This document shows, piece by piece, positions 27,641-58,100 of a stretch of DNA of 64,000 bases. Source of the DNA: Eukaryota sp. TZLM1-RC (Eukaryota > Protista > Metamonada: BaSk clade); NCBI GenBank assembly GCA_040285825.1, contig JAUPSS010000013.1:372001-436000 (forward strand). Direction: 5' to 3'. Under the pieces are notes generated by a model. It was given only the letters and a program-made list of their open reading frames with translations, searched no databases and was not told the origin of the DNA. A program made the position numbers and the translations under genes. Position 1 is the first letter of the stretch. Every line of letters begins with the position of its first letter.

Positions 27641-30600
27641 TGTTGCCTTAGGTTGCAAAAGTGGTTGAGATAAAGATAATTTATTTTCTATTCATATTAT
27701 AAAAGCCTTAGGGCGCCAACACTGCTTTTTCCCTTTTTCAGAGCTAATAGGCTTATATAAATATGAATCTAAACTATAAACAAATAACTAAATAACTAAA
27801 TAACTACAAATAACCTAATCTAAACTGAGAATTAGCATCACTTCCTAATTCTAGTACTACGTCTAGGCCTCTTGCAAGGCGTAGAGCTATTGGAGGTACT
27901 CTTACGTTGACTAGAGGAACGTTTTCCAATTTTCTTGTTATTCCTACTGAACAACTTGTAAGCTTCTGAATGTTTAACTGAATGGAGAGGCTCTTCTGTT
28001 GTCTCACCGCCAAACCATTGAACAGTACAGAAACTATTTGAGTCAGAATTATATTCTGAGAGGATTTTCTCTATAATATGTTTCTCAGCATCGCCTGCTG
28101 CGACTGCTTTTAGAAATTCGATATCCTGAGGATTATCTGCGTTATAGATTTTGCAATCTTTCCTAGCAGCTTTTAATTCACTGCCAGTGATAAGATTCTT
28201 TAATAATAAACTGGAGTTGGAAGGATGGTCTATTACTAAAAAGGGTCCGTTCCAAGATCCATGTAATTTATTATTCTGTTTGGTTTTACGTAGGACATAG
28301 TCACCAATATTAAATACTATAGAGCGCGAATTAGTATTGTCTACTGAAATCGGAGTATTTGATAATTGATGACGCTCTGCTTCTTCCCTTTTTTCTTGCA
28401 GACGAGTATTTTTCATTTTAATATCGTCTAATAAAGGTATATTGGAATCAAATTTTGATAAGTTTCCTAATATGTTTGCAGGGTCCGATCTTGGACTAAT
28501 CGAAGATCCGAACATTAGTTCGTAAGGTGTAAAACCTGTCTTTCTGCTTTTAGTGGAATTGTTGTTGTCGAACTTAAATTGAATTAGTAGGTTTCATTGT
28601 ATTTTGACTGATGACGTGATACTCGTTTATGAATCAGTTTTATTAATAAACTCAGATTTCTCTCTCTCCTTCGTGTGTTCATCTGCCTAACGGCATCAAT
28701 AATTATTGGCCCTTCTTATTTCAGATGACTGTTCCCTCTGTTAACCTGAAGTCTCTTTCTTCCATGAAAGTTGAAAGTGTTTTTCTGTTCCTATAGGAGT
28801 GAAAGATTTATTCTTCGGTGACTCCTAAGAAAGAGCTTGTTCCAGCAAGACTCTTGGTCGATTCTTTTCTGTTAGAGTCCCTATCTCTCCAGAAATCCGA
28901 CGGCTGATCCAGTGACGATGTTCTTCTCAGACATCTACAATCTGTCGTATCGTTCGCCATGTACGAAGATTTTAGTCTGGCTATGTCAGAACTGATGCTT
29001 TATGTCCGTATTGGTGACGTCCGAGAACGTATGTCCTGTTACCTGCGACGTTTTTTCCAGGTAAAGAGTAGGGCTTCCGGACTGAAGTTGCCAGACATAG
29101 CTTTTCTGAACCGATTTGCCAGAGGACTTCTTTTCGTAGGTATCCAACGTTCTCATACCATCGATGCACCGGAGAATTTAACAAACCCCATATCTCCCCT
29201 CTATTGAGCCAGTACTGTATTTGTCCTCAGAAAAATGGGAAAAAGTAGTGTTGTTGTCGAACTTAAATTGAATTAGTAGGTTTCATTGTATTTTGACTGA
29301 TGACGTGATACTCGTTTATGAATCAGTTTTATTAATAAACTCAGATTTCTCTCTCTCCTTCGTGTGTTCATCTGCCTAACGGCATCAGAATCTATTAATA
29401 GTTGGGATATGGGTACATAAGTAGACCAATTTCCATAATCATTAAAATCTATTAATATTTTCCTCAAGCATTGTAGAACGTCTCTATGTTTTCGCTCTAC
29501 GAGTCCATTACTTTCAGAGTAGTGGGGTATTGAGTTACTCATCTCAATAGCTAATCTATTACACACTATCTTAAAAGTCTCATTGGCGAACTCAGGACCA
29601 TTATCACTATGAATTAACATAGGTATGCCAAAAATTGCGCCAACGTTCCAAATTAAAGCGTCTGCGGTATCTAAGGCAGTGAGTTCCTTCAGAGGGACTA
29701 AAATTGAATATCCAGTAAAAGAATCTACAAATACTAATAAGTATTTATTACCATCACTATCAGTATTCAGAGGTCCAATTGTGTCGACATTTAATCTAGC
29801 AAAAGGACGATCTGTCCAAAGGGAACCTGTGGAAGGTGTTTTTATTCTTTTAACTGGTGCCGTTTTTTGACAAGTTGGGCATCTTTTGATGTGGTTTATG
29901 AGGTCCTTTCTCATATTAGGCCAGAAAAAGTCGCTTTTGGACAGTTTATGTAGACTGTCGTTTTTGCTGGGGTGGCCTGATTGAACCAATCCATGAATTA
30001 ATAATAGTGCCTGTTTTCTGAGGCTTTTTGGAATTAAAATTTTATTTTTGTTGTTTTTCCAAATTTTGAGTATTTTCATCTAGAATTGCATTCTCAAATA
30101 GAAGGTCATTATTGTTTTTGGCTAATTGTTGTTCAGATCTTATTTTAGAGAACCAGGAGGAAAAAATAGATAAGTCCTGGTGTCTACTTAGGGATGAAAT
30201 TGATGGGATGTCTTCGAAGTCCGAATCAGAATCATCGTCTATAGGAGGTATCTCGTAATTCGAAAGTAAAGTATCTGGTATATTTATACTACATATAGAA
30301 GGAGTTTCCTCATTTTGATCTAAATCAATATTCCTCGATAGCATATCTGCCCAGTGGTTATCTTCACTTGGTTCATGGACTATATCAAAGTCGAATTCAG
30401 ATAGTATCGGCAGCCATCTCTTTACAATTCTATTTTTCTCTGGGGCTGTGGCCAGGAATGCAATATTTTTGTGATCGGTGAAAATTGTTAGATGTCTAGT
30501 CAAAAGGTAGCTTTCTAAACAACTTTCAGTTAAAATCAGAAGAATTGCATATAATTCTTTCTGTAAAGTGGACCATTTTCTTTGTGTTTCTGTAAGTAAT

Positions 30601-31540
30601 CTACTATAGAACGACAAAGGTTTCACTTTTCTTTTATTCAGCGGGGTTCCTGCAGGGGAGTATGGTTCAATTTCTTGCCAAATAACGCCTCCAACTGCTA
30701 CATCTGATGCGTCGGTACTTATTAGTACGCGCTTGCCCGGAGCTGGTAATTCAAGGGGCATGTGATTAATTATTAAATCTTTTATTTGTTCAAGATAATC
30801 GTCATGCTCGTTGGTCCATTTTATTACTCTAGGTTTTCCTTTAATTAACTCATTAATTGGAGCTATTAATTCGGAAATACCTGGAAGCCAATCTCTTATA
30901 TAATTGATGGACCCTACCAAAGAGCGAACTTCTTTCACTGATTTTGGTCTAGGGATTCTCATCAAGGCTTCGATTTTTTTTCTTACTAATAAATCTGGTT
31001 TTATCCTGGAAGGTGCTTCCTAAAATATCAATAGGGTGTTTGGATGTTACGAATTTACATTTACGTAAACCTATATTTACACGTCTATTTCTGGCGCATT
31101 GGAGGACTCTTTGTAATCTCTTATAGAATTCATCGAAAGTCGTTCCAACTATTATAATATCATCAATATATATGAAAACGCCATCAATTTGGAATATTTC
31201 CATCATTACATTTTGAAATACTGCTGGGATGTTCTTTAATCCGAAGCAAGCTCTTTTAAACATAATTGACCTTCCAGGGATTGAGATTGATGTTTTTTCA
31301 ATGTCCTTTTCTGCTACATTCATTTGCCAGAAAGCTTTTGGTAAATCAAGCGTGGCTATGTAATCTGCTCTACTTAAAAACTCTAAAATATCACTAATCC
31401 TAGGTAGATTAGGTTCTACTGAAATCGTGTGGGCATTGACTCCATCTTTACCGCTAAAGTCTCCCGTTAACCTGGGTTTCTTGCCGTCAGGATATATAAC
31501 TAAGACGATAGGAGAGCTGAATTTATAATTAGATTCAACT
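27641..31540 (-). mobile_element. pol: Ty3/Gypsy family B, 5'-truncated pol (RT-RNase H-integrase-chromodomain) with 81-bp 3'LTR
   Basis: FIYIDD, DASD, HHCC (H..GH..CPTC), DDE (VDTIG, HSDNG, GLVER), GPF and chromo-like tail. PPT at 27722-27739; LTR 27641-27721. Interrupted by a TRIM at 28560-29387. Confidence 0.93.
28560..29387 (+). mobile_element. Miniature non-autonomous LTR element (TRIM/TR-GAG-like), copy 1
   Basis: Identical 139-bp LTRs at 28560-28698 and 29249-29387 (TGTTG..GCATCA); TSD GAAT (28556-28559/29388-29391); PPT AGAAAAATGGGAAAAAGTAG; broken gag-like frame 28725-29207. Confidence 0.96.
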
Positions 31541-32520
31541 GTACCTTCGAGAACTTTTACCAATCTTCATCTTGCTATTGTGAAATTACAGCAGTCTGAT
31601 CTAATTGGTTTTGAAGACCTGGATTTTTCTAAACGACTTAGTGTGACTAAGATTAATAATCCCGTCTCTGCTGCCTTTTTATCAGACATCCAGAACTGCA
31701 CTAGTTTAATATCTCAGCAACCAAGGCCATTTGGTCTTCACTTAACAAATGAAGCATGGAAACAAAACATGCGGTTGAAATTGGGGCTGTATCCAAGTGG
31801 TCTTTTGGATAATTCTGTTTGTATTTGTAACGAAAAACCTACTGCCAATTTCCGTCATATTATTAGTTGTAAGAAATTCCTTCAATATCGGTCAGTTCTT
31901 CATAATGCCGTTCGTGATGTGACATATGAGATGTTCAAGTGTTACAATTTTAGTTGCAAAGTAGAACCGTTGTTGAATCAATATAGCGATAATAATCTGT
32001 TTAATTCACGTCGAGGTGATTTAATTGCTTCTTTTGTGGATTCCTCTCAAGTTGTTGTTGATTTTACTACAGTTGATCCCTATGCTTTTATTTATCGTGA
32101 TGATGTTTTACTTAGTGCTAATGGTCATTTAAACAAGGCTGAAGATCGTAAAAGAGATAAATATACTGAGATATTAAATGATTTAAATAAGAATCTTTAC
32201 TCGAAGTTTTCGTTTGTTCCTTTTGCCTTTTCGATTTTTGGCAACATTGGACAGTCTGCCTTGAATTTTATCAATGATTTTGGTAATTTATGTCGTTCAA
32301 GTGGTAAGAATTTTGCAGGGAATTTATGGAAGAATCGTATCATTTTCGCTTTGTACAGAAGTGTTCCCAAGTACTTGAGTTTAATGATGTCCAAGCTGTA
32401 TAAGGATTCATCAAGAGTTTGCGTGGAGAATTTTGTTTCTTATGTGTTTTAGTTTGTTTTGTTATGTTTTGTTATTTTTTTAATAAAATACATTTATAAA
32501 ATTGTATAAAATAAAATTCA
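31538..32520 (+). mobile_element. 5'-truncated CRE family A copy abutting the Gypsy B RT
   Basis: Highly similar to 853-1770; intact RLE C-terminus in ORF 31580-32452. Confidence 0.92.
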
Positions 32521-32673
32521 TAAATCAACCCAACCCATTAATGCCCCTATGTACTACTTTAAGGTAACTCTAGAGACCACATTCACGTGGATGATTACAT
32601 TTACAGGAAAAGGGTATCTCCATAAGCATTGCGAAGAAATCTGACATGAAAATGAACTGACGGTTTTGCATCA

Positions 32674-33402: not shown

Positions 33403-33504
33403 AGGAAGAAACCGTGTTATTTTTTTTTACTTACATCAAAATTCTTAACAAGATAAACACCTCCTAAATATTACCCCAATTCACCACTTTTACCATCATC
33501 AAAT

Positions 33505-34563
33505 GGATTCAACTTCTTTATTTTTCATTTAGAAAAACATATTAAGTTTTTTATGCTTAAATTTGCTTTACAAGGACAATAACCCATATTTTGAGATCTT
33601 GTGCTCTTTCCATCGCATTAGATTTTTGTCGTTTTGTTAATTCATTGAGAACAGAATTTTTTGCTGATTTATTGGATGTAGAACCTGGAATGTTGAAAAA
33701 TCACTTATTTTCGTCAGCAAATTTGGGTGGTATTGGCTGTACTAAATCTTCTATTGTGTGTCAATCAGCATTTATGGGCGGTGGCAAGAATTTGATTTAT
33801 GAATTTTCTCGTAAATTTCCTGAAAATTCTTATTTGTTAGTTCCCTGTTGCAGTCCATATTTGAATGAGTTTATCTTGCGAATCCGATAGATTGCTTACA
33901 CAAATCTGGACCAAATGTTTTCCCCAAACAACTCAAGAAATTCACAACCTATCTCTTTCTAATTTACAGTTTTGCTGTAAAAAGCTTCAACAAAAATTGT
34001 CAAAGATTTTTGAAAGCTTGGATTTTAATATTTCCCTTCTGCAACTCTTTTGCAAAATATGTGTGATATTACATCTTCTGTCTCAGAAACAACGATTCCT
34101 CAAGTTCATGTCACTCTTTTGAGTGATTTTGACTGGACTTTGTAAATGAAAGTTCATTGCTTTATCTGGCCTGATAATTTACCTTATAATTTAGTTTGTA
34201 AATGTTCTCGAAAAATTACTCATTTGTTAAATAGTCAACATTTCAGTAGTTTTAGAAGTAAGGTGCACGATGCTGTAAGAGATCAATTATATTGTATGTG
34301 CAAGACACATAGAATTGAATCCCTTTTGGAACCTCTGTTGTCAAATCTGTTTGATTCTGAAGATGACTTTCATAAGAATAATAGAAGAGATGTCATATTA
34401 ACTGGATGGAACCTTCATCTTATTGGATCTAATGTCTGTTGCTCCTTGTAATGCCTCAACTTATAGGCTCGCTTATTCTGAAATTCATAATCCTTTTTCA
34501 AGTGCTGATAATTTTAACATCAAAAAATACCACGAACCTTGATCCAAGTTGTCTAGCCAACAG
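33505..34563 (+). mobile_element. Decayed CRE family D copy (segmental duplicate of the 24.3-25.4 kb copy)
   Basis: Shares the same internal deletion (DFNISLLQL) as the 24285 copy. Confidence 0.88.
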
Positions 34564-36830
34564 TGTTGGTCTAAGTGCACGGGTTTCCATAAACTAAAAA
34601 TAAACAGAGTTTTGTGAAATGGAGTTAAGAAAATCAAAAAAGAATAATAGAAACTAGAAATTGAACTAATGATGATGTGCTACCACAAAATCTAAACTGA
34701 GAAGTGGCATTTAGCATTAGCTAACACTGCCTCTTCTTCTTTCTTCCACGTTTTCTCTGGGCAAGAGGATCAGACAACTTGATGAAACGGTGATAAGCGG
34801 AAGTATTCTTGATCGAGGCTTCAGGTTCTTTTGTGGTTGTACTATTAAACCAGAGGACGGTATCAAGATCGGTTTCAATTCCAAAGATGGTTTCTTGGAA
34901 CATTTATCCAGCATCAGCGGCAGTATATACGTCAAGGACAGCTGGGGGCAGAGAGGAATGACACGGTTTCACAAGGTAAGCAGATGTAGATCTATGTGGG
35001 GGTTCAGCAGGTACTGGTGATAATGAAGATCAGGGAGAAGTTGTTCCGGAGTCACTTCAGTGGGTTAAGGATGGAGATGCTAGACGGAAGTAGGACAGGG
35101 AGGTAGAGTGAAAGTTGAAATCATAAAGCTGCTTGCCATTAATTCTAGGAATCAGGATGTCAAGGGTCCTGGGAAAATGATCACACTTGGGGGAGTTGGA
35201 ACACTCTTGGGGGTTACATGGGGAGGCACTAGACCGTGGAAATGATATCTGGCTTGTTCAGCACGGTACCAGTGGCTATTAAGATACATATGGGGTCCTT
35301 CAACAATAGTAGGTGAGTTGATCATTCGGTGGAGACGAGTGAGGAGATGCCAATTTCTATCGAAACTGAAGGCGGCCATGTGTGTGAATAACGGAATCAA
35401 GTGGAAGATACAGACACTATCTATGATCGTTCCCAATGTGATATCAGGATGGAAATGATTGAGGATGACCAGGTGGGCGTTGAGGGGCATGGCGTCAGGG
35501 ACGTAGACTAGATAAGGCATCTTACCGTGATGGAAGTAGATACGAGAGTTCCAGTCAGCACAATGGATGAGGTCGTTGATTTTGAGGTTCCTGGAACCGA
35601 CATCTAAAGGGATATTTGCGTCATGAACAAAGGGTGCTGGGGCATCCTTATACAGAAATGGCAGGTCAAAGTAGTGGATGAAGAACTGAGCATATGTTGG
35701 AGAGGGGAGGTCGGAGTAACAGGGGTTGAGTTTAGAGTGTATAGAATGTTTACGGAAGTTCAAGTAAGCGGTTGTGGAATGAATGAGTGAAGTTTGGGTA
35801 CGGAGGTAGGTGGGGCTAAGTTTTGGATGCTTTTGATCTTTAAGGGGTCTATGCATCGTGTACAATTATCAAAAATGGTACCTAGGACTTTCACATGGTG
35901 TTTGTCACTTTGAAAAGAGCACTTGCGAAGACCTATTTTTACACAGAAACGGGATTTTTGGGATAGAATGAATTCAAGGCGTTGAAGATAGGATTCTTTA
36001 GTTCTGGCAGCAACATTGATGTCTTTTATGTCAATGAACACACCATGAGAGTGGAAAATTTGAGTCATGATCCTCTGGATTACAGCGGGTAAATTGTTCA
36101 AATCAAAGGCAGCGCGAGTGTACTTGATCTTGTGTCTGGGGATAGCAATGGCGGGCTTTTTTTGGTCATCTGGGTGTGAATGCAGTTGCCAGAAGGCTTT
36201 TGACGAACCCAGTGTGGCTATATACTTACAGTCGGACAAAAATTTACCTACGTCTGTAATGTGCGGCAGATCAGCGAAAATAAGGACAGAGAAATCGTCT
36301 ACTCCTTCAGCGCCGGAGTAATCACCTGTTAAGTGGAACTGGTTTTCCAGGTCGTTGGTCAAGACAAATGAGGGAACTTCTGGGAGTTTCGTACAGCACA
36401 GCGGATCCCTTGTTAACGAGGACATCTTTTTCCTCATGGGAGACCTTTAACTTATCGAGAAATAAGTAACGGAACTTCTTGGAGACCATCTGGGATTCGT
36501 CCTGGAAAAGAATTCCCATTGGTGGGCAATCGATTTCTTCGGGGTCTGGCAGCTTGGAGAATATTTCGGGGTATTTGAATAACAGTTTCTTGATAAAATG
36601 TTTCAAGCAGGTGTCAATGCGTAATAACGTAGTCTTCTCAAGGTCAGGCAAAGTAGTGAGAGCAGATACTAAATCAGAAGGCAGGATTAATTGGTCGGGG
36701 ATGAACTCATCTTCCAAGAGTTGCAGATTCCTATAAAATAGGTTGAAAAACAGGTAGTCAACCATTAGGATATCTAGTTTCTTGAGTAAATCGCAGCAAA
36801 TCATACAGGAGTTATAGCAGGTCAGTACGG
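34564..36830 (-). mobile_element. Decayed Ty3/Gypsy family C (RT and chromodomain remnants)
   Basis: HLTGDYSG, YIATL..KAFWQL and a degenerate FIDIKD; TVLWFNSTTTKEP tail; LTR-like segment 34564-34687. Confidence 0.8.
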
Positions 36831-36864
36831 CAAAATTAGCGTCTATTTAATCCAATTTAGTGTA

Positions 36865-39055: not shown

Positions 39056-39943
39056 CTAACCTTCCGTCAATACTTCAATTGCACCTTCAATATTCCCTCT
39101 TGAAGTTACCAAAGCTCTTCTCGCTTCTCCTTCCCTGAAGCCCATGTCCGTCAACAGCTCCACCATTGTATCTGGTGGCTGATACGGTGGTAAATCCTCC
39201 ACGTGTCGTTGGAAGGGAACACCTTGAGGGAAGGCTGTTGCCATTGAAGAAGAGACGGAAACAGTGGGAGGAGGGCGGGTGGCAAGTATTGGAAGAATAA
39301 ACTGGGCACAAAACTTGGAAAAAAATGATGGCACAATAAGATCCAGAATTGTTCTAAAAAAGGAACAATAATTGGTTAAAGTTGCAATAACAAGACCAAT
39401 TAAGAAAGCTACAATCGTAAATGGAGGGAAAACCAAAATTAATTGGGCTAATAGAATAAAAACAAAGAATTTTTCATTTATCGGAACCACGCTGAATATC
39501 TTTGTGGTTGCAGAAGCTGGATAGGCCATAAGTGAGAGGAGAGTTGAAGAAAACACACAAGCTGGAGTGAAGAAAGGTGTGTCAGGAGAAGGAAACAAGG
39601 TAGATGTGGATGGGAAATCGTATCGGGATAGCAAAAGTTGTGCTGCAAATGACACTATGTTGGATAAGATCAGCATTCCAGCGAACCTGCTAGACCCCAA
39701 CAGCCTTTCGGATATGCGTCCGATGTAAATGAGTGGAGCACCTACAAGAAGAATACCAGCAATGGGAAAGCTAAAAAAAGTATAGAATGCGTAGATCGCA
39801 CGCATAAAATTATCTGACTGTAGTAGTAGTGATGTCGTTATTGTTGGCGCATGAAGCGCAAACCACAGAAATGAGCATATGGTTACAATTATCAAGTATG
39901 TCTTACTGACTGGTGCACCGAGAAAGCCTGCTGATGAGTACAT
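39056..39943 (-). CDS. UBAC2/Dsc2-like rhomboid pseudoprotease with C-terminal UBA domain
   Basis: GFLGAPVSK N-terminus, ERLLGSSRF, multiple TM segments, VELLTDMGF..EARRAL..SRGNIEGAIEVL. Confidence 0.9.
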   Translation of the reverse strand: MYSSAGFLGAPVSKTYLIIVTICSFLWFALHAPTITTSLLLQSDNFMRAIYAFYTFFSFPIAGILLVGAPLIYIGRISERLLGSSRFAGMLILSNIVSFAAQLLLSRYDFPSTSTLFPSPDTPFFTPACVFSSTLLSLMAYPASATTKIFSVVPINEKFFVFILLAQLILVFPPFTIVAFLIGLVIATLTNYCSFFRTILDLIVPSFFSKFCAQFILPILATRPPPTVSVSSSMATAFPQGVPFQRHVEDLPPYQPPDTMVELLTDMGFREGEARRALVTSRGNIEGAIEVLTEG

Positions 39944-40004: not shown

Positions 40005-43000
40005 TATTGTTATTAAACAACAAATATGAAATTCACAATTAAAACTCCACATCCTCAAAACCTGCCTCCCCTACATCAAAACAATTAATTGCTAAAGATT
40101 CAGAAAATTTCCCAAAAGAAGATAGTGAATCAGAAATTAGTTTTACCATTCCCTTAAAAATAGAAAATACAATCCTGTTTTGCCAGTAAACACGATTGAA
40201 AATTCTTCCAAATCTTTCCTTTACAACTACAACAAAATCCTCGAGGAAACCCATAGCAGCCTTACCTAGAGATCCAAGCGAAGAAAAAACAAATGGACAT
40301 AAATTATATTGTGCATGAGAATTTTCATTAACCGAGGAAATGGATTTCGCATATTTAGCAATTTTATATTTTTCGCCTGCAAGAAGAGGATTATTTACAT
40401 CCGAGTTAATGAGATGTTCGTTAGAGGAATTACAAGGGTCAATAGAGATGGCGTCCAAAATAGTAAAACTACCATTTAAACCAGGAACAACTAGATCACC
40501 TCTGGTCAGACCCATAGAAGCTCTGTTGTAACGCGTACTATCAATATTGGGATCATCAAGAATTAATTTTGATAACAGCGGTTCTAAAAAGGAATCTACT
40601 CGATATGATTTGCACATTACATAAAATTGGTCCCTGACGTTATTATGCACTTTGCTTCTAAACGTAATGAAATGTTTGCAGTTCAAAAGATGAGGAAACA
40701 AAAGAGGTTTACCACATTTACAAGTTAAATGATTGGGCAAATTGTTTGGCCACAGAAAACAACGAAAACGCATGTTTAGAAGCCATTCATTGTTTTTTTA
40801 ACAAAAGTCCATAAACAGAGGGAACTTGAGTTACTAAAGCAGCAGCTGAACTATCACGAATATCCTTTAAAAAATTACCGAAAGCGGGATTTTTAGTTTT
40901 GGCCAAGCCAAGTCTTACTTCATAATCCAAGCCTTCATATAATTTAACCAGATGGTGCTGAAGCTTTTTCAAGCAAAAACGTAAATTTGGAAGTGATCGG
41001 GTGGGAATTTCTTGAACATTTTGAGGAAAACACTGAATCCAGATATCACCAGGCAAATTTTCTAATTCAAATTGCAGTTGATTCAAGTAAAAATTTGATT
41101 CACCATTGATCAGATGAACATCAAAAGGGAACCTTTGGAAAAATTCAAAAACAAAATTTTTACCACCTCCCAAAAATGCTGCTTTACACAGAATCGAAGA
41201 TTTGGTGAATCCAATTCCACCCAAATCTGCTGAACAAAATACATGACTTCGAATTAAAGATTCATTTACATCTAATAAAGAAAAAAAAATTGACTCGAAG
41301 TTTGTTAAAAGATCTGCAAAAATTGAGAGATACCGATGGGGGAGTTGACCTTAAAATATGAGTGAATTTTCCAGAATAACAAATTTTTAAAATAAAAAAT
41401 TTGATGTGTTTCTCAATGTCACATTCAGCAATAAAACTAAGATCCTTGTCAAGCTTCTCCAATAAAATGTTTAACTGGGAATAAATTTCATCCAAATTGC
41501 CAAGCCAACATCCAAGAAACTTAAAAGCTTGTTGGTCGTAATTGATAAAAGGAATCTGAGCTCCACCAATCATCAAAGATTGTTTTTCTTTACCAATCAA
41601 CAGATATTTAGATGGGTTCAAAGCTAAACCAATTTCTTTGTATTTCGCCGCAATGTCTTCAGAAACCCTAGAAATGCTTTCAAAAGAACCAATATTAGAA
41701 ATGTCATCCATATAGGCAACAATACGCAAATCAGGGAAATCTTGTTGTGTCATTTTAATAATATTATGAATAGCCAAACAAAAAAGCAAAGGGCCAAGAG
41801 GATCACCTTGTTTCACACCAGAAGAAGATTCAAGGGTAAAGGAGTCAAAAATTAAGTCTGATTTTTTTCCATAAAATAAATAAAAATATGCATAAAGTTC
41901 AGGAAAATCTTGAAGAAACACATCAAAAATACAATTACGTTTCACAGAATTGAAAGCATTTTTGAGATCCAAATTGAAAATATATTGATGTTGTTGACTA
42001 TTGAAAAAAACATCTGAAGTCATTGAAGCAACAGAAGCACTTTCAATAGTTTTTATACCAAATTGGAAAGGCTTCAAATAGTCCCTTGCTTTAGTAGAAA
42101 TTCTGCTAAAAATAAGCGAAGAAAGCAATCTGGTTAATGACTCTCCAATAGCAATTGGTCTTACTCCATCAGGTTTGTCACCTTTACCAGGTTTAACTAA
42201 AGCAACTAAACGGGCAGCAGTCAATTCATGCGGAGGAACATAATTCAAACACATTAAATTTTGAAAATAGGAAGCAAGATCCTCACAAATTTCAGGAGCA
42301 TTTTTACAGGCAGTTTTCAACAAATCAAAGGAAAAGCCTGAAGGACCAGCAGCTTTTCCTTTTAGTAATTTAGCAACGGCATATTTAATTTATTGAATTT
42401 GCACACTTGATTAAATTAAATCATAACTAATGGGACGACTATCATTAAACCAAGATTTCCTCTACAAAATCTTGATTTGCTTGCTGTCTAGCTAAAGCTT
42501 CTCTAATTCGATTGAAAAACCGCGGTAATCTATTAATAATGGCAAATTGAATCCGTGAACGCCATAAAAAAATATCAAATCTTTTCATTGTTTTTTCTTT
42601 CACCATTTTTTGGAAGTCATCCAAAAAAGTTTCTGCTTCAACTGATAATCTTCCATTTATCGAAAATGGGAAAGCAATAAAAACCAGCTGTGTATTTCTA
42701 TCGATATTTGCATCTTCAATTTCTTTGTCATATTTTCTATGTTTTTCTTTTGCTTTAAAATCCAGAGCAGCCACAGGATTAAGTTTTCTTCTGTGAACCA
42801 AAGTATCGTTTGCAACATTTCATGAGACAAAGTCAACAATAGCTTCAGAATTATCAATCCAATCACAGTATACATCACCTCTATCATCAGAACCAAAATT
42901 ATTCAGAGAAAGTGTTTCTTTCAGCAGGGGCTCTTTGATACACGATATCCTTGCAGTTTGTGCCTTATTGAAAACAGTGTCTCTAACAGCATCATGTAAT

Positions 43001-45790
43001 GAAGAACGATAAGTTATCAATTTAGAGCAATTTAGAGCATGGCGCAAAGTGAGTTGAGGTGAATTCGAACAAATACATTTTTCTTTTGATAATAATTGGT
43101 TAATGGGGATGTTCAAATATAATCTCATTTTTGTTACAAATGCTTCATTAGTAGCACACAATCCAAATCTTCGTGGTACAATGGTTACAAAAAGTGAAGA
43201 ATCTGACACCTTGTTTTCACAAACACCCTTTTCCAATAACAATGAGTGAAGATCTTGATTTAAAACAGCCGAGCTGCAAATATTATTATAAAGATCTTTT
43301 TCATACATTCCAGTCAATCTTTTCTGTAATGTTCGAAGAGTAGACTTCAAATTTAAAACATTTTTTTCTGGAATATTGCCATTGAATGATTGGGGAAAAC
43401 ATCGACCCCATTTTTCTACATCAATTCTTGAAATTTCTTCATTTAATGCAAAAACAGTGGAACTTTGCGTTGTCATCAATAAATCTTCCCAATCTGCAAA
43501 TCTTTCGGAGAACTCAAAGATTGCATTTCTGCATCCACCAACAAAAGCACACGAGGTAAGAATAGAAGCCTTCGTCCACCCTAAACCACCATATTGTGGA
43601 CTAAGGTAAGCATGATCTGGAATTTGAAACATTTTACATCCCAGTAATTGAGACAGAACTTTTGCACGTAACTCATTAAACTTTTGAGCCAAAGGTCTAG
43701 TGACGAGAGGATTTGTAGATCGAAATATATGATTAAAATTGGAACTAAAACACAGTCTTATAATGGTAAATTTGATGTGTTTTTTTATATCTAAATTCAT
43801 CATTCGGTCAATTTTGTCAGAAATTGAGTTCAACTTTTCAAACAATTTTTTTGGTAATTTCATCATTATTTCCTAAAAACGAACCCAAATGACGAATAGC
43901 ATCAATTGAATATAATTTGGCTTGAATTTCAATATCATCAATTATTGTGGAAACTGGAGAATTCGATAACAAAACACATTTAAGTAAATTAAGTCGGAGA
44001 CCAATTTTGGTAAATAATTCTTTAAAACATACAGTTGCTTTTTTTCACAATATTTAATTCACCAATAAGCACAACATCATCCATATATGCAATCATTTTT
44101 AGTGAAGGAAACATCTCTTGAATTTGCAGTAGAATAGGATGAATGGCCAAACAAAACAAAAGAGGTCCTAACGGATCTCCTTGCTTTACGCCACTTGATG
44201 AAATCAAAATGTTGTTACCAAAATGTAAATTAGAATATGTGCAATATGTTGATTGAAAATATGGTATTAATTCTGGCATATATTGCAATAGAGCACCATG
44301 GATACTGCGACGACTTAGCGAATTGAAAGCATTACTAAAATCCAATGACATGCAAACATTGGATTCATTTTGACGAAATAAGACATCAGTAGCAAAAATC
44401 GCTGAAGAGACTCCATCTGTAGTATTTATACCATATTGAAAGGGTAATAAAATCTTTTTAGCTTTTTCATTGAACCTGCTTAAGCAACACGCAGAAAAAA
44501 TATTATGTAAGCTCTCAGAGACTGCAATAGGGCGAACATCCATTTTTGAATTTTTGACAAGTGCAGTCAAACGAGAACTTCTTAATTCTTCTGGGTACTT
44601 GCGTTGACCAGATAATATTTGGTTGAAAAATTTGGTCAATAAACCAAGGCAATCTTCTGAAGAAATAATCGCGGCTTTTACATGATCAATAGTAATACCA
44701 GAAAGTCCGGCAGACTTACCACGGCAACGGCATTGAATACTTCTTGAGCCTGAAAAGGATTTTCGAGCCAATATTCACAAATTGGCGGTTTAAGTGGACA
44801 AAAATTTTCAGTTGGATGAAGCGCTTTCAGTTTTTCAACAGTTTCATAATTATTATCAGCCAACTTACCTGAAAAAATATTTTTTAAACCGCTTCCATAT
44901 CTACCTCTCAAGAACAATTTCCTTGCTTGAAACGATGAACTGGCTTTATTTTTTTTCGGTTTGTAATTAATTGATTTTTTATTCTTTTTGGCAAAGAATT
45001 TCCAAAATCTTGATATGTTCCATTTGTTTGATTTCAATTGGGAGGAAAAAGAACGCATTTCCATTGACAAAGGAACAGAACTGGCAGGACTCACCTCTAC
45101 AGGAATTTTAACAGGTGTACGAAGAGAATCACTTGTTTGACAGTCAAAACAAAACAAGAGAGGGCGACCATTAGAAGAATTAGAGAGGAACTTTTTGCAA
45201 AAAGGACAACTATGTTTCAAGACATTATCCGTAGGATCAGGAGCAACAGTTTTTGGTAAATGAGTTTGATCAATATTTAAATCATAATTAACATCATCAG
45301 CAAAAACATTGGGAACAGGAGGAAGATTTAGTTCGGATGACGTTTGCAAACTATTAACAATAGAAATATTGGTTTTCAGTCTCATTTTTTCGGTAATAAT
45401 ATCAGGACATTTTCTAATGTTATGACCAACCTTGCCACATTTGGAACAGGTATGTCTTCTTTTTTGCACTTTTTCAGGCGTAATATCAGGGGCATCACAC
45501 AAAGGCAAAAAATCTTTTTTAAAAATTTTCAAATTTTTTTGAGAAGAATTTCGAGCATAGCTTGAAGGGTCGGGAGAGTGGAGAAGTGAAGGGGATGAGC
45601 TTGATCTGATGGGTAGAATCTTTGCTTGGGCGTTCCAATCAGTATCAGAGTCACTGTCAGTCACTGGCATCGTTTTGGCAAAGACACAGTACGACTTTGA
45701 CGCCTTGACAGAAAGTGAAATATGAGAGGGTTGACTAAGGGAGGGGGAAAAAGATTGTAGACTTGGGAACAAAATTCTTGAGTTTCACAA
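40005..45790 (-). mobile_element. Apparently full-length CRE family C element, interrupted by a nested family B copy
   Basis: N-terminal CCHC knuckle (CSKCGKVGHNIRKC), CPFC..CFDC, RT YMDD, CKCG..HLLNC, RGDLVV..LDA. Removing 42383-44723 plus one TSD copy restores QEVFNAVAKLLKGKAAGPSG in frame. Confidence 0.9.
42383..44723 (-). mobile_element. 5'-truncated CRE family B copy nested in family C, 10-bp TSD
   Basis: TSD GCAACGGCAT at 42373-42382 and 44724-44733; RT YMDD; RLE with TGA at 42820-42822. Confidence 0.9.
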
Positions 45791-46255: not shown

Positions 46256-47460
46256 AGCAAATTTGGGTGGTATTGGTTTTACTAAATCTTCAATTTTGTG
46301 TCAATCAGCATTCTTGGGTGGTGGCAAAAATTTTATTTATGAATTTTCTCGTAGATTTCCTGATGATTCTCATCTGTTAGTCCCCAATTGTAGTCCCTAT
46401 TTGTATGAGTTATCTTGTGAACTTGAAAAATTACCGCCACAAATTTGGACCAAATGTTTTCCTCAATCAATTCAAGAAATTCCAAACCGATCTCTATTTA
46501 ATTTACAGTTTTACTGTAAAAAGCTTCAACAAAAATTGTCAAAGATTTTTGAAAGCTTGGATTTTGATGTTAGACTTGGCTTGGCCAAGAAAAAGAATCC
46601 CGCTTTTGCAAATCTTTTACAAGATATGTGTGACAGTACTTCCTCTGCCTTAGTAACAACAATTCCACAAGTTTATGGTACTCTCTTATCCGATTCTGCT
46701 TGGACTCTGAATATGAGATTTCGTTCCTTTATCTGGCCTGATAATTTACCTCATAATTTAATTTGTAAATGTTCTCGAGAAATTACAACTACTCATTTGT
46801 TAAATTGTAAACATTTTATTACTTTTTAGAAGCAAGGTTCATGATGCTGTAAGAGACCAGTTATATTGTATGTGTAAATCTCATAGAATTGAATCCTTCT
46901 TGGAACCTTTGTTGTCAATTCTGTTTGATGCTGAAAATGATTTTCATAAGAATAATAGAGGTGATGTCATATTACCTGGATTAGATGGAAGCTTCATTTT
47001 ATTGGATGTAATGTCTGTTGATCCTTGTAATGCCTCAAATGAAAGGCTTGTTAATTCTGAAATTCATAATCCCCTTTCAAATGCTGAAAATTTTAAATTC
47101 AAAAAATACAATGAACCTTTGTCCAAATTGGCCAGTCTACAGCATGCAAAATACAATTTGTATCCATTTGTATTTTCCCTTTTCTGGTTCACTTGCACCA
47201 ACTGCTTTACGTTTTTTGGATGATTTTGAAACTATTGTTCAGAGAAGAACTGGCAGAAATTTCAACAGATTGTTTTGGCAAAATAGAATTGTGTTTTCTA
47301 TTTTTAAGGGGATGTTGAAGATGGTTTCTGATGCTTTGCTTTCTCTTGGATCTCACTATGAGAGAGTTGCATCTAGTGTTTTTGTTCTGGGAGAGATGGA
47401 TTTTTTAGATGTTGATTTATAGGTTTTGAATAAAATTGAAATTAAATAAAAAAAAATTAT
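46256..47460 (+). mobile_element. 5'-truncated CRE family D copy
   Basis: ANLGGIGF...CKCS..HLLNC...RGDVILP..LDVMSVDP; A-rich 3' end. Confidence 0.9.
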
Positions 47461-47785: not shown

Positions 47786-48111
47786 CATCAATTAAATGAG
47801 TTTTAATTAAATGAGGTTGAATTAAATGAAGTTTAATTGTTTTTAATGTTCAAAGTATTGAGATTAAGGAAAATTAAGAAAGTTTCACTTTCATCGAGAA
47901 AAAATAAATGAATTAAATAAACATATTTCAGTACTGTGCATAGTCACTGCCACGTCATAAAAAAAGAAAATAAACATATTTACAAAAAATGTGGCTATTA
48001 AGAATTTACAAAAAAATATTGATAAAATTACCAATAATGAACTCCAATGAAGACTCGATGAGTCACAATACAAAACCAAATCCGAATAGAAATGGGTTGA
48101 TTAATCAAAAA

Positions 48112-51100
48112 TCAATCCAAATTTGATTGAATCCAACGATTGATGTTTGAGTAATCAGAAATTATAAATTTTGGACAAGAACTGCTCAATACTTTCAAAA
48201 TTTTGCCAATAACGTTATGTTCAGCAATTCTTGGCAAATTTTGAGACAAATCTTGTGGTAAGAGAATATTTTCTGACAAGATGAGCTCACAATAACTATC
48301 CAACAATAGCAAAATTTCCTCCAAAAATTTGAAATCAAGAATCTCAGATGTCAAAAATGAAGTTTTGATCCTTACTACTAGAGTATCAACCAAATTTTGA
48401 CAGTGGCTGAATAAGACGAAAATTTGAGGTGTTGACGTGTGAGAGGCTAATTCTGTTAGATCAAAGTTTGCTTCCGAAAATTTTGCTGAAAATTTCGTCT
48501 TACGGACACAGTACATGGGAGATGTTTCAATTGATCTTACAACAGATGAAAATTTCAAACAAACATTGATAAGGATCAACGACGCGAATTTGACTGGACA
48601 TTGATTGATGATTGTCGTGATTGATTGAACAAGAGTTGTGAGAACCAGATTTTTGAGTTTCAAATTTTCACCAGCAATTTTGGCAAGTTGTTTTTCTGAT
48701 ACCAACTTGTCAGGAAGGCTGAAATTTTCGCCAAAAGATTCAAAATTTGAATAACGAACAAGTAGGTCAATCAAACCAGACAGGAAACCAATCAGATCAC
48801 TGACTGATTTGATTGACCCAAGATCAATTTTTTCTAAATTATTATCAAGATTTGTGAATAATAATTCAGAAAATTGATTAGACTTGCTGGAATTTTGATT
48901 AAATAGTGAAGAAATTAAATCTAAAGCAAAAGAAAGAAAAATGTCAAAATTCTCATTGATTTGCTCATCAATTTGCTCATCAAGTTGATCCATTTCACGA
49001 TTTTCTTCTACAATTTGCTCATCAAGTTGCTCATCAAGTTGATCCATTTCACGATTTTCTTCTACAATTTGCTCATCAAGTTGATCCATTTCACGATTTT
49101 CTTCTACAATTTGCTCATTAATTTGCTCATCAAGTTGATCCATTTCACGATTTTCTTCTACAATTTGCTCATTAATTTGCTCATCAATTTGCTCATCAAG
49201 TTGATCCATTTCACGATTTTCTTCTACAATTTGCTCATTAATTTGCTCATCAAGTTGATCCATTTCACGATTTTCTTCTACAATTTGCTCATTAATTTGC
49301 TCATCAAGTTGATCCATTTCACGATTTTCTTCTACAATTTGCTCATTAATTTGCTCATCAAGTTGATCCATTTCACGATTTTTCTTCTACAATTTGCTCA
49401 TTAATTTGCTCATCAAGTTGATCCATTTCACGATTTTCTTCTACAATTTGCTCATTAATTTGCTCATCAAGTTGCTCATCAAGTTGATCCATTTCACGAT
49501 TTTCTTCTACAATTTGCTCATCAATTTGCTCATCAAGTTGATCCATTTCACGATTTTCTTCTACAATTTGCTCATTAATTTGCTCATCAAGTTGATCCAT
49601 TTCACGATTTTTCTTCTACAATTTGCTCATTAATTTGCTCATCAAGTTGCTCATCAAGTTGATCCATTTCACGATTTTCTTCTACAATTTGCTCATCAAT
49701 TTGCTCATCAAGTTGATCCATTTCACGATTTTCTTCTACAATTTGCTCATTAATTTGCTCATCAAGTTGATCCATTTCACGATTTTTCTTCTACAATTTG
49801 CTCATTAATTTGCTCATCAAGTTGATCCATTTCACGATTTTCTTCTACAATTTGCTCATTAATTTGCTCATCAAGTTGATCCATTTCACGATTTTCTTCT
49901 ACAATTTGCTCATTAATTTGCTCATCAAGTTGATCCATTTCACGATTTTCTTCTACAATTTGCTCATCAAGTTGCTCATCAAGTTGATCCATTTCACGAT
50001 TTTCTTCTACAATTTGCTCATCAATTTGCTCATCAAGTTGATCCATTTCACGATTTTCTTCTACAATTTGCTCATTAATTTGCTCATCAAGTTGATCCAT
50101 TTCACGATTTTCTTCTACAATTTGCTCATTAATTTGCTCATCAAGTTGCTCATCAAGTTGATCCATTTCACGATTTTCTTCTACAATTTGCTCATTAATT
50201 TGCTCATCAAGTTGATCCATTTCACGATTTTTCTTCTACAATTTGCTCATTAATTTGCTCATCAAGTTGATCCATTTCACGATTTTTCTTCTACAATTTG
50301 CTCATTAATTTGCTCATCAAGTTGATCCATTTCACGATTTTCTTCTACAATTTGCTCATTAATTTGCTCATCAAGTTGATCCATTTCACGATTTTCTTCT
50401 ACAATTTGCTCATTAATTTGCTCATCAAGTTGATCCATTTCACGATTTTCTTCTACAATTTGCTCATTAATTTGCTCATCAAGTTGATCCATTTCACGAT
50501 TTTCTTCTACAATTTGCTCATTAATTTGCTCATCAAGTTGATCCATTTCACGATTTTCTTCTACAATTTGCTCATTAATTTGCTCATCAAGTTGCTCATC
50601 AAGTTGATCCATTTCACGATTTTCTTCTACAATTTGCTCATCATGTTGCTCATCAAGTTGATCCATTTCACGATTTTCTTCTACAATTTGCTCATCATGT
50701 TGCTCATCAAGTTGATCCATTTCACGATTTTCTTCTACAATTTGCTCATTAATTTGCTCATCAAGTTGATCCATTTCACGATTTTCTTCTACAATTTGCT
50801 CATCAATTTGCTCATCAAGTTGATCCATTTCACGATTTTCTTCTACAATTTGCTCATTAATTTGCTCATCAAGTTGCTCATCAAGTTGATCCATTTCACG
50901 ATTTTCTTCTACAATTTGCTCATTAATTTGCTCATCAAGTTGATCCATTTCACGATTTTCTTCTACAATTTGCTCATTAATTTGCTCATCAAGTTGATCC
51001 ATTTCACGATTTTCTTCTACAATTTGCTCATCAAGTTGCTCATCAAGTTGATCCATTTCACGATTTTCTTCTACAATTTGCTCATCAAGTTGCTCATCAA

Positions 51101-53889: not shown

Positions 53890-55182
53890 TGGAATGTTGT
53901 AGTTGGATGTAGAATCAGAATATCAATTTCCAGTCATTCATTGGGGTTTGAGTAGACAAAAGCGTTAGTTAAGGTTTGTTGTTTAGCTTTAAAATGTGTA
54001 TATTTTCGGAATAAAAAATATAATATCTCACAATTGAAGCAAAATAAGTTAATGAAAAACTTAAAACTCTCTTTAATTCGAATAATTCAAATTATATTTT
54101 TAATTTAGATTTCAAAAATACCTTTAATGTTGTTAAGAGGTCATCAACATTATTATTATTATTAAACTTGAGTGAATGAAGTTTTCCAGAGTCACTATTG
54201 ATTTTTGTAAGGATTCAACAATTGATTTTTCAATTGAAATTCCGCTCTGCTTTGCTAAAAAGAGCAAAATCAAAAAGTACAACGAATCATTATCTCAGCT
54301 AGGGCGTGTAAATAAATAAATATGCATATTTTAATATTATTTAGCATATATTTGGAGTTAAAAACTTAAAATTTGAGTGAGTGAAGTTTTTCCAGTGTGT
54401 TCTTGGAAGGGAAGAACGTTGTCGTTAAGTTGACTTTATTTTGTTGACATTGTTTTAAATGAAAACATTTGAAAATGACACAACATGAATCACTATAAAT
54501 GAAATCATTGACATATGTTAGCCTTTTCCAACAAACAGATTTCCAATGAGTAAACAATTGACCCCAATCCACTCATCGTTTTTGAATACATTTTTAGTTT
54601 ACAAGTTGCTGATGGAGGAAAAGTCACCTCATCTTGTTAAAACCCGTAAAATTAAAATAAAACAATAGCAGCCTCTTCTTGTTTCTAGGCGATTCATGTG
54701 ATTTTCCAGTTCTAGACAGTATCACATCACTCATATCTTAAATTTGTTTTCGGTGTTATATTTCTTGATTTTCTTAACTCTGTCATAAATTTCTGTCATT
54801 TATTTTTGTTTAAGAATTTAAGTGCACGTAAGCCAAAAAAAGAATCTACTATTGCTCAGTATTTCTTCTTCGGTTGCCAGTGGTCACTGTTCATTAATGG
54901 TAACAAACGCAGTTAACGTTTGGATACTTAAGGATAGTTGTACGTTCTTTGTGTCAGCCATATCGAATAAATCAATCAAATTTGCCAATTCAGATTGTTT
55001 GATCTGAACAGAAATTTTATAGGTATCATTGATTTAAAGAAGAATATGATGCTCTATCCATATATGATAACAAAGAATAAGGAATAATTTATTAGAATTT
55101 CACCGGCCCTTATAAAGGCCATCACTAGTGAACTATGTTATATAAATATAAATGTACTAGACTAATTGTCCACAGTACAACA

Positions 55183-58100
55183 CTACCTTTTCCCTCTCTT
55201 AGATCTCGAACGAGAGCTACGAGTACTGACTGCAGGGGAATTAGTCTTAGATTTGGAATTAGAAGATACCTTCCGTTTCCTGGTAGTGTGAGGACTAATA
55301 GAGCGCAAATATGTTTGATATGCCTCAGTGCTTTTGACGTCAGCAACTGGGACAGACGAAGTCTCGCCGCCATACCAAACTGCGGTACAATAAGGAACTT
55401 TATTATTGTTCGAATCTACGTAATCAAAGTGATCTATAATTTTAACGATTACAGATTCTTCCATATCGCCAGCAGCAATATTCTTATGCCAATAAAGATC
55501 TTCTTTAGGGAAGTCTGAAAGGTATAGTTTACAATGATTTATACTTGCCGTAGACATCGAACCAGTGACAAGATTCTTGAGTAATAAACTTTTATTGGAT
55601 TTAACTTCTTCAACGAGAAAAGGGCCAGCGAAGCAACCATGGAGTTTACCATTAGTCTTTAATCGCAAAACTAAGTCACCTTTATTAAAAGGGTTCCTAT
55701 GTTTGTTAACTTCAGGCAGTTGTTGAGCTTGCCTGAGCTCTGCCTCTTCGCTCTTCTTTGAAATCCTTTCAAGTTTTGCTTCAAGATCTTTAACAAAGGG
55801 AATATTAACATTAGCTGATTTTATTAATTCAAACATATTACTAGGATCAGCTCTAGGGCTGTGGTCGCTACCAAACATTAAATTGTAGGGCGAATGACCA
55901 GTAACTCTACTAATGATGCCGTTAGGCAGATGAACACACGAAGAAGCGAGAGAAATCTAAGTTTATTAATAAAACTGATTCATAAATGAGTATCACGTCA
56001 TCAGTCGAAATACAAAGAAACCTACTAATTCAATATGAGTTCAACAACAACACTACTTTTTCCCACTTTTCTGAGGACAAATACAGTACTGGCTCAATAG
56101 AGGGAAGATATGGGGTTTGTTAAATTCTCCGGTGCATCGTTGGTATGAGAACGTTGGAGACCTACGGGAAGAATTCCTCTGGCAAATCGGTTCAGAAAAG
56201 CTATGTCTGGCAACTTCAGTCCGGAAGCCCTACTCTTTACCTGGAGGAAACGTCGCAGGTAACAGGACATGCGTTCTCGGACGTCACCAATACGGACATC
56301 AAGCTTCAGTTCTGACATAGCCAGACTAAAATCTTCGTACGTGACGAACGATACGACAGATTGTAGATGTCTGAGAAGAACATCGTCACTGGATGAGACG
56401 TCGGATTTCTGGAGAGATAGGACTCTAACAGAAAAGAATCGACCAAGAGTCTTGCTGGAACAAGCTCTTTCTTAGGAGTCACCGAAGAATAAATCTTTCA
56501 CTCCTATAGGAACAGAAGAACACTTACAACTTTCATGGAAGAAAGAGACGTCAGGTTAACAGAGGGATCAGTCATCTGAAATAAGAAGGGCCAATAATTA
56601 TTGATGCCGTTAGGCAGATGAACACACGAAGAAGCGAGAGAAATCTAAGTTTATTAATAAAACTGATTCATAAATGAGTATCACGTCATCAGTCGAAATA
56701 CAAAGAAACCTACTAATTCAATATGAGTTCAACAACAACACTAACAGTTGAATTGATTTGAAGTTGTACAATTGGGATATATTCACTCCAATTGCTATAA
56801 TCGCCAGAGTCCACCAAAATCTTTCTTAGACTTTGTAAAATGTCTCTGTGTCGTCTTTCTACTAAACCATTGCTTTGTGAAAAGCTAGTTAGTGAACGAC
56901 TTACTTCAATGTTTAATAAATCGCATAACCCTTTGAATATGGCATTTGCAAATTCAATACCATTGTCACTGTGAATCAACAGTGGGATACCAAAAATTGA
57001 TACTACACTCCATAGGAGGTGATTGGTTGCCTCCACTGCATTCAATTCCTTTACAGGGCAAATAATCGTATACCTGGTGAACGAGTCTACAAAAACTATT
57101 AAATATTTGAATCCATTATCATCTTGTTGTAATGGTCCAATAGTGTCTGCGTTTAATCGTGCAAAAGGTCGATCAGCCCAAAGAGAGCCAGATGATTCAA
57201 TGACATTTTTAGGCACATGCGCCGTCTTTTGACATGCTGGGCATCTCTTAATATGGTTAATCATGTCTTTGCGCATGTCGGGCCAAAAGTAATCACTATT
57301 GAGTAATTTCTTTACGCTAGTCGTCACACTAGGATGGCCAACATTTGCATGTCCATGAATGATAGTTGAAGTCTGCTTCTTTAAACTATCTGGGATGACA
57401 ATCTTCCCACGATTGTTGGTATACAATTGAATATCTGACTTATAATTGTAATCTTTATAATAATCAGGATTTGAATCAACATCTATAAGTTGTTCTTGCC
57501 TAATCTTTGAGATCCAAGTGTCAAATATATCAAATTTAGTATCCTCAACTGCTTCTTTCAGTGCAGATAAGCTATTGATCGTGGGTAGCTCAATTGTGGA
57601 CGGTTGAGTAATATCATCCCTTAACAAATTAACTCTAGTTAATAAATTTAAATAGGGTAATTGTTCTTCAACTCTGTGAGGTGCCAAGTTTCTCACTTGT
57701 TGGACTCGAGGAGTTTTGGGTTTGGTGTCAACCAATCTAGACAACATGTCTGCCCAATAATTCTCCTCGCCTGCAGTGTGGACTACATCAAAATTGAATT
57801 CTGACAATATTGGTAGCCACCTCTTCACAATTCTGTTCTTTTCAGGAGCTGATATGAGGTATGCTAAATTTCTATGATCAGTGAAAATAGTTAATTTCCT
57901 CGAAATTAAATAATTTTCTAAACTACTGTCAGTGAGAATTAGTAAAATTGCATACAACTCTTTCTGAAGTACAGACCAATTCTTTTGTGAAGTTGATAAT
58001 AATCTGCTAAAGAAGGCAATAGGTACAACCTTTCTCTTAATTAGCGGTGTCGTAGGATCTTTAGGTGGGTTAGCTTCTTGCCATATTACTCCACCTACAG

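Follow-up and report, generated by a model that had tools for sequence, protein, structure and literature searches.

A young miniature LTR retrotransposon that nests mainly in other retroelements of a metamonad protist, with two copies in Gypsy integrase genes

Two insertions in the integrase genes of different Gypsy elements

The stretch of DNA examined here (the window) comprises 64,000 nt of contig JAUPSS010000013.1 (assembly GCA_040285825.1) of Eukaryota sp. TZLM1-RC, presumably a strain of Skoliomonas, a free-living metamonad. It carries two copies of a miniature long terminal repeat (LTR) element of about 828 bp, each of which lies inside the integrase gene of a different Ty3/Gypsy retrotransposon. 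Copy 1 (28560-29387, plus strand) belongs to subfamily 1, is 828 bp long and is oriented antisense to its host, here termed Gypsy B. Its 139-bp LTRs (5' LTR, 28560-28698; 3' LTR, 29249-29387; plus strand) form an identical pair with TGTTG..GCATCA ends, and the target site duplication (TSD) GAAT occupies 28556-28559 and 29388-29391. Copy 2 (55914-56740, minus strand) belongs to subfamily 2, is 827 bp long and lies in the sense orientation of its host, Gypsy A; its LTRs (55914-56052 and 56602-56740, minus strand), also an identical pair of 139 bp, are bordered by the TSD CTAA at 55910-55913 and 56741-56744. Sequence identity between the two copies is about 95-96%, with 9 mismatches per 139-bp LTR. 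The coordinates, TSDs, identical LTR pairs, opposite orientations and LTR differences given in an earlier reading of the window (the original prediction) all hold.

Gypsy A (55046-62786, minus strand) is a young, full-length element with 137-bp LTRs (55046-55182 and 62650-62786) that are 100% identical and a TATT TSD; its gag (61367-62677), pol (56745-61428) and integrase tail (55183-55913) are all encoded on the minus strand. Gypsy B (27638-31563, minus strand) is an old, 5'-truncated fragment that retains reverse transcriptase (RT), RNase H and integrase sequences with frameshifts and ends in a 3' LTR of 84 bp (27638-27721, minus strand; polypurine tract [PPT] GGGAAAAAGCAG). The pol genes of both hosts are of the Ty3/Gypsy type, with Pfam matches to RVT_1, RT_RNaseH, Integrase_H2C2 and rve; the domains follow the order protease, RT, RNase H and integrase in Gypsy A, and RT, RNase H and integrase are found in Gypsy B. 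The two are only about 61% identical in protein. Two direct repeats of about 1 kb (24434-25472 and 33559-34598), previously taken for the LTRs of Gypsy B, are actually copies of the 3' half of a non-LTR retroelement.

To place the breaks on the integrase proteins, the host flanks on either side of each insertion were translated separately and never joined. Gypsy B is broken at ..QLLID|STKSRKTGFTPY, with the TSD spanning the codons GAT TCC, and Gypsy A at ..QLQINSTV|SRVTGHSPY, with the TSD spanning GTT AGT. When the proteins are aligned, the two sites share a codon phase and are separated by exactly 9 nt. Both lie about 50 residues past the rve core, in the stretch that links the DDE core to the C-terminal tail, and the separate flank translations agree with the original prediction on this point.

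For copy 2, an empty site is available in the form of a Gypsy A paralogue, about 1% diverged, in Logan contigs from three runs (two of the same organism and one of a second organism, all from the same study). This paralogue joins position 55914 directly to 56746 and skips 831 nt, which equals the length of the element plus one copy of the TSD; the joint therefore represents an empty site and confirms the CTAA duplication. In the second organism, the same contig enters the start of the element LTR (TGTTGTTGTTGCAC..) just behind window position 57109; a Gypsy A-like copy there thus has an antisense insertion within the core of its integrase, at a distance of 365 nt from the site in Gypsy A. Gypsy A-like and miniature-element sequence of the second organism (55783-57109) is about 98% identical to that of the window and differs in the insertion. 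Given this different insertion, either the miniature family has continued to move after the separation of the isolates or it is polymorphic. The filled junctions of both window copies are bridged by no contig among the Logan matches listed. A search for RNA runs of the organism found none. The two window insertions are independent and recent events, as had been proposed: their TSDs, orientations and subfamilies differ, their LTR pairs are identical, and an empty-site paralogue exists.

Each insertion severs the integrase C-terminal domain together with a chromodomain-like tail. In the structure model of the tail severed from Gypsy A by copy 2 (55186-55911, minus strand), an SH3-like domain (residues 73-135) matches the C-terminal domains of the integrases of murine leukemia virus, Rous sarcoma virus and foamy virus. 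It is followed by a module of three strands and a helix (residues 153-208) that superposes on the chromodomains of Chd1, Rhino, HP1, SUV39H1 and others (Z scores of 6.6-7.8; root mean square deviation [rmsd] of 1.2-4.4 A), the best match being Chd1 CD2 (Z 7.8, rmsd 1.3 A over 54 aa). The AlphaFold model was built on an alignment of the integrase tails from the local Gypsy families, which agree well with one another, and its predicted local distance difference test (pLDDT) score is 85-91 over residues 150-200. Chromoviruses (MAGGY, Tf1/sushi and plant CRM) are Ty3/Gypsy elements that carry a chromodomain on their integrase and target heterochromatin. The local Gypsy integrases, which are predicted to end in an SH3-like domain and then a chromodomain-like fold, would resemble them in this respect, as they would in the accumulation of insertions in repeats. 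Loss of both C-terminal domains certainly disables the two host copies, and the proposal that the insertions disable or truncate their hosts is borne out to that extent. Host disabling is nonetheless a side effect and not a strategy, because only two of the 22 insertions mapped in this genome (see below) are at the integrase site.

Structure, origin and candidate partner of the miniature element

In copy 1, the 5' LTR is followed by the palindrome ATAATTAT and then by TGGCCC (28699-28714, plus strand), a putative primer-binding region. No tRNA match was recognisable in this segment; the window itself contains no tRNA, and the four tRNAs of the other loci fetched were not compared. Next comes a decayed gag remnant (28726-29207, plus strand) that has an in-frame stop in its N-terminal part and of which an 82-aa open reading frame (ORF) remains (28959-29207, plus strand). 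The element also contains the PPT GGGAAAAAGTAG, and this tract (29232-29248, plus strand; ..AAATGGGAAAAAGTAG) directly precedes the 3' LTR. The element is thus not coding-free, and its inside is a decayed gag.

The 82-aa ORF matches annotated 'hypothetical proteins' of TZLM1-RC and of the related isolate GEM-RC1 in a protein search, and it aligns with longer proteins (P0018 and P0006, and P0007, P0020 and P0021 of GEM-RC1). A relative of about 1.1 kb at another locus (L022:9832-10923) has the same LTR ends, the post-LTR sequence ATAATTATTGGCC and the PPT, and it encodes a small Gag with a CCHC zinc knuckle in its C-terminal part (PF00098 zf-CCHC, 27.8 bits). Relative to it, the miniature element has lost about 300 bp, the CCHC knuckle with them, and carries in-frame stops. 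Judged by this alignment, it is an internal-deletion derivative of a Gag-only LTR element of about 1.1 kb, and it probably makes no useful protein. Of note, a tRNA-Gln gene (L022:9240-9311) is situated about 520 nt from the L022 relative, and none of the 22 miniature copies is so close to a tRNA gene.

The direct LTRs with TG..CA ends and the short TSD place the element among LTR retrotransposons, and its size and LTR length fall within the range of terminal-repeat retrotransposons in miniature, known as TRIMs (under about 1.5 kb, with LTRs of about 100-250 bp). Like TRIMs, it is shorter than 1 kb, has 139-bp TG..CA LTRs, a PPT and TSDs, occurs as many near-identical copies and depends on an autonomous partner; it has no pol, and its gag remnant is interrupted by in-frame stops and lacks the knuckle. 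One locus (L015:9834-11625) carries a tandem dimer of the form LTR-internal-LTR-internal-LTR within a single TSD (ATAT), the first unit of which has about 260 bp more gag than standard copies; such tandem arrays are also known from the maize TRIM Wukong (PMC4528315). Unlike TRIMs, the element has a TSD of 4 bp rather than 5 bp, a palindrome plus TGGC without a recognisable tRNA match in place of a primer-binding site, and a recognisable decayed gag rather than a non-coding inside, and its host is a metamonad protist. In structure it qualifies as a TRIM, the odd primer-binding region being the one exception. Among non-autonomous LTR elements that are Gag-only or otherwise in part coding, the L022 relative, which encodes just a small one-knuckle Gag between its LTRs, is a close parallel, but the miniature copies, with stops and without the knuckle, probably supply no protein.

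Several cis signals are shared with the resident Gypsy elements. Within the window, the junction GGGAAAA[AG][GC][TA]AG|TGTTG between PPT and LTR occurs only in the two copies of the miniature element, in Gypsy A and in Gypsy B. Gypsy A has TGTTGT..GCATCA LTRs, the post-LTR region TTAATTAATGGC and a 4-bp TSD, and the LTR ends of Gypsy B resemble those of the miniature element. A 5' LTR of the Gypsy-B type at 22666-22748 (plus strand) ends in ..ACGGCATCA|ATAATTATTGGC, identical to the miniature element. The Gypsy-B-type LTRs are very short (about 83-84 bp), and the copy that begins at 22666 (plus strand) seems to be internally deleted, as only a C-terminal piece of integrase (23450-24064) is left. 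In the miniature element (28699-28706), in Gypsy A (62642-62649, minus strand) and in the Gypsy-B type (22749-22756), an 8-nt palindrome (ATAATTAT or TTAATTAA) separates the 5' LTR from TGGC, an arrangement unlike a tRNA primer-binding site; the palindrome may act in self-priming or dimerisation. When the ORF of the element was compared with the gag of Gypsy A and with other local Gypsy proteins, no similarity was found, and a partner was therefore assigned from cis signals only. On these signals, the B-type Gypsy is the best candidate for an autonomous partner, and mobilisation in trans by a particular Gypsy family would be expected. The idea of a satellite that borrows Gypsy machinery is upheld as far as a non-autonomous element with shared TGTTG..CATCA ends, 4-bp TSD, PPT-LTR junction and palindrome is concerned; the part of it that had the satellite steered to the integrase site is not.

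Distribution of copies and the question of a preferred codon

Copies of the family were collected through annotated proteins that match the ORF, which yielded 21 genomic places and 22 insertions, both window copies included. All 22 insertions have a perfect 4-bp TSD, every one of them different, and TGTTG..GCATCA LTR ends; the elements are 819-831 bp long with LTRs of 139 bp. They fall into at least three subfamilies (828, 827 and 831 bp), and copies 1 and 2 belong to different ones. The ORF of copy 1 is identical to that of five other genomic copies (P0009). The 22 insertions are real, independent and recent integrase-mediated events.

More than half of these insertions (13 of 22) lie in the C-terminal half of the ORF of a non-LTR retroelement whose RT has R2 proteins as its nearest solved relatives (R2Bm, 8gh6, E 1e-6). 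Two, both in the window, are in Gypsy integrase, and the remaining seven copies match neither retroelement protein, several of them lying just past the end of a gene or between convergent genes. An example of the main target in the window is the 3' half of an R2-like ORF at 46256-47460 (plus strand), with related copies at 24311-25609, 25653-27015, 33506-34564, 40022-41528, 42388-43952, 12925-14104, 20549-21673 and 787-1839. The R2-like copies have a 5'-truncation profile, and one has a poly-A tail and its own TSD. The flanks of most copies other than the two in the window match repeats that are also present in the window. The host repeats of the non-LTR group, which had appeared to be different, all map onto one protein. 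When the 13 host homologues (25-96% identity) were mapped onto a 647-aa ORF (L015:6223-8166, minus strand), the insertions fell at residues 344, 366, 370, 419, 434, 439, 453, 495, 536, 564, 569, 572 and 601. The region that is struck includes a zinc finger and a PD..D..K nuclease motif of the PD-(D/E)xK type, both read by eye only.

The R2-like family makes up 26% of the window and 17% of the loci fetched, shares that the 13 of 22 insertions exceed (binomial P of 1e-3 and 1e-5). No insertion was found below residue 344, even though 35% of the available non-LTR target is there (P=0.004), and 11 of the 13 insertions are antisense to the R2-like ORF (P=0.02). With the integrase insertions counted too, the antisense fraction is 13 of 16. 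No gradient in GC content that would explain the regional bias was found along the non-LTR ORF; a slight, local AT-rich dip occurs at 20-40 nt on either side of the sites. A regional preference for retroelement 3' halves is thus supported. At one locus (L008:4238-4835), a 598-bp, 5'-truncated and poly-A-tailed non-LTR fragment with the TSD GGCACTCAC lies inside another non-LTR copy, and a miniature element is inserted exactly at the 5' junction of this nested fragment, giving three layers of nesting.

Some retroelements place their copies at a fixed landmark, with the integrase steered to within a few bases of it, as is the case for Ty3 at the start sites of RNA polymerase III (Pol III), for the Dictyostelium element DGLT-A and for Tf1 at Sap1 sites. 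The miniature element differs from such position-specific elements. None of the 22 copies has a tRNA gene within 1 kb, and Pol III targeting was rejected on this ground; the sites share no motif and, in the main target, are spread over hundreds of bases. No motif common to the 22 sites was found within 40 nt on either side, and in a comparison of 5-7-mers with control windows no enrichment survived multiple testing. The original prediction had the element steered to this integrase site, and the collection of genomic copies and flanks, which it had named as a check, does not support such steering among these annotated-ORF copies: two of the 22 mapped insertions are in Gypsy integrase, a third case, in the second organism (a sister isolate), is 365 nt away in the integrase core, and the other 20 copies are at 20 different places. 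A protein search for ORFs that end in the antisense LTR peptide revealed no further interrupted ORFs. A Gypsy pol protein that seemed to be broken at the same site (P0035) was discarded as a candidate, since its GPY motif persists further on; its linker is divergent or frameshifted and holds no insertion.

The non-LTR target, which is sampled far better, can be used to look for clustering on a fine scale. It contains two pairs of insertions within 4 residues of each other, where 1.3-2.7 are expected by chance, and four pairs within 5 residues, where 1.5-3.2 are expected. Close pairs thus occur at a chance rate, which indicates that there are no fine-scale hot spots where this is testable. One such pair, 11 nt apart in a repeat of about 1.2 kb, is located on different contigs and in opposite orientations, with the TSDs AGAC (L020) and GTAC (L007); it was considered as a second hot spot and rejected, as pairs of this kind are expected by chance.

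What the sites do have in common is a weak palindromic preference: the base at 7 nt before the TSD is T in 15 of the 22 cases, that at 7 nt past it is A in 14, and the TSD itself is A-rich. When a position weight matrix (PWM) was built without the host family under test, true sites scored at a median of the 84th percentile (Wilcoxon p=4e-4). In each of the two Gypsy hosts, the site used has the best PWM score within about 9 nt in either direction, which fits a model in which a preferred zone is chosen and then the best local base within it.

Non-random nesting of LTR elements is known from plants (Jedlicka et al., 2019; PMC6911290), as is nesting of transposable elements in the human genome (Levy et al., 2010; PMC2836564), and the features described include regions of preference, insertion of elements into related families (autoinsertion), weak palindromes, a bias in orientation and an approximately four-fold excess of nesting (PMC6911290, PMC2836564). 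The miniature family is similar in having preferred regions, older copies of the related family as targets, a weak palindrome, an orientation bias and a preference for transposable elements over other intergenic DNA. It differs in that nesting in plants favors the 3' untranslated region and seldom coding sequence, whereas the targets here are 3' coding parts, namely the integrase and the linker, zinc-finger and nuclease half of the non-LTR element. Moreover, plant TRIMs tend to be in or near genes (PMC4717578), whereas the miniature element is found mostly inside other retroelements. The strong bias to 3' coding halves of retroelements, mostly in antisense orientation, extends the reports from plants and humans. 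Literature searches returned no paper on transposons of the skoliomonad lineage; what they did return concerned its cell biology and the reduction of its mitochondria.

Explanations for the nesting pattern

The observations are best accommodated by a regional bias toward retroelement 3' halves combined with a coincidental spacing of 9 nt, and not by targeting at the level of a codon; a probability of roughly 0.6 is assigned to this reading. According to it, a TRIM-like element would have arisen by internal deletion of a Gag-only LTR element and would be mobilised in trans by a resident Ty3/Gypsy family, the signals being closest to those of the Gypsy-B type and somewhat less close to those of Gypsy A. 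The integrase of the partner would produce the 4-bp TSDs and impose the weak palindromic preference (T at -7, A at +7, an A-rich TSD and locally AT-rich DNA). Its tail, if the modelled chromodomain-like fold functions as such, may tether integration to the chromatin on other retroelements, and such tethering to repeat chromatin would explain the nesting. New copies would then land mostly in the bodies of retroelements, above all in their 3' coding halves, and the two integrase insertions would be independent outcomes of this regional bias, with the local sequence preference picking the exact base.

Several points weigh against this reading. The sample of 22 consists of copies with annotated ORFs, and unannotated copies are missing from it; similarly, the background for the enrichment is made up of neighborhoods rich in transposable elements (the window and the fetched loci) rather than genome-wide shares of each target class. 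The chromodomain-like fold has middling Z scores, a Pfam search of the tail gave no match, and of the three cage aromatics only the conserved W is retained in the alignment. Incomplete cage aromatics are also a feature of the 'group II' chromodomains of plant CRM-type elements, and the tails of the local Gypsy elements are likewise incomplete. Two hits within 9 nt have a P of about 0.007 if insertion is uniform over the roughly 2.9 kb aligned between the hosts, and of about 0.02 for a preferred zone of the same narrow width as in the non-LTR target. Lastly, a hAT-like transposon interrupts the integrase of a third Gypsy element (..TSHTPY|ELMFG), having landed about 30 nt downstream of the position hit in Gypsy B. 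This element, of about 2.07 kb (L009:152-2235, minus strand), has terminal inverted repeats (CAGCAATGTGTAT..), an 8-bp TSD (CTCCGTAC) and a 554-aa ORF without a Pfam match, and is termed hAT-like by the length of its TSD; its position slightly favors a locally accessible stretch.

The last two points bear on the possibility that the integrase linker is a true hot zone, one or two helical turns wide and set by a positioned nucleosome or a bound factor, within which the preference of the integrase picks the base. It is favored by the 9-nt spacing in the same codon phase of hosts that are only about 61% identical (P of about 0.003-0.02 overall, depending on the zone assumed), by the local PWM maximum at each site in its own host, by the nearby hAT-like transposon and by the copy of the sister isolate in the same integrase gene, 365 nt off. 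However, just two of 22 copies are there, close pairs are at chance rate in the far better sampled non-LTR target, no k-mer motif is common to the sites, and many other Gypsy pol genes of the genome are uninterrupted at this position. The pair is unusual but not compelling, having been singled out only afterwards by a reader on the lookout for oddities, and a hot zone of this kind is considered unlikely. An extended version, in which the tail of the partner integrase would read a chromatin mark on the 3' (nuclease-coding) halves of retroelements, the integrase linker would be a genuine hot zone, and the element, as a true hyperparasite, would preferentially inactivate the integrase or endonuclease modules of competing and partner retroelements, is decidedly doubtful.

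It is also conceivable that insertion is random and that the pattern reflects retention only, with copies surviving in dispensable DNA, which in this compact genome would mean mostly dead retroelements. The several copies among the seven outside retroelement ORFs that lie just beyond gene ends or between convergent genes would fit such a process, as would the R2-like family alone making up 26% of the window. Retention alone does not account for the lack of insertions in the 5' 35% of the non-LTR target, for the antisense excess or for the significantly high scores of true sites on the preference matrix, and the copies, with identical LTRs, are very young, which leaves little time for selective loss; the chance that retention is the whole explanation is considered small. 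Very improbable, finally, is integration of element cDNA into Gypsy cDNA within a shared virus-like particle, with the composite then entering the genome: Gypsy A and copy 2 are indeed both very young, each with a 100% identical LTR pair, and an element that parasitises Gypsy particles would be packaged together with the RNA of Gypsy, but Gypsy B is old, frameshifted and 5'-truncated and yet holds a copy with identical LTRs, which must have inserted in the genome, most copies are in non-LTR elements, which skip such particles, and the composite of Gypsy A and the element has been seen only once.

Under the preferred reading of a regional bias, the present evidence does not point to a new kind of codon-level targeting. 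The miniature family is rather a clean example of a young, non-autonomous LTR element, with an intact TSD at every copy and a traceable Gag-only parent, and its insertions may offer a natural means of reading out where the integrase is targeted in this protist.

Two other features of the window are of a different kind. A tandem array with a period of 54 nt (a 42+12 sub-pattern, with 99 register copies reported) extends from 48839 to beyond 50245 and overlaps a 419-aa ORF (48112-49371, minus strand). Among the retroelement fragments lies a host-like ORF with Rhomboid and UBA domains (39056-39943, minus strand).

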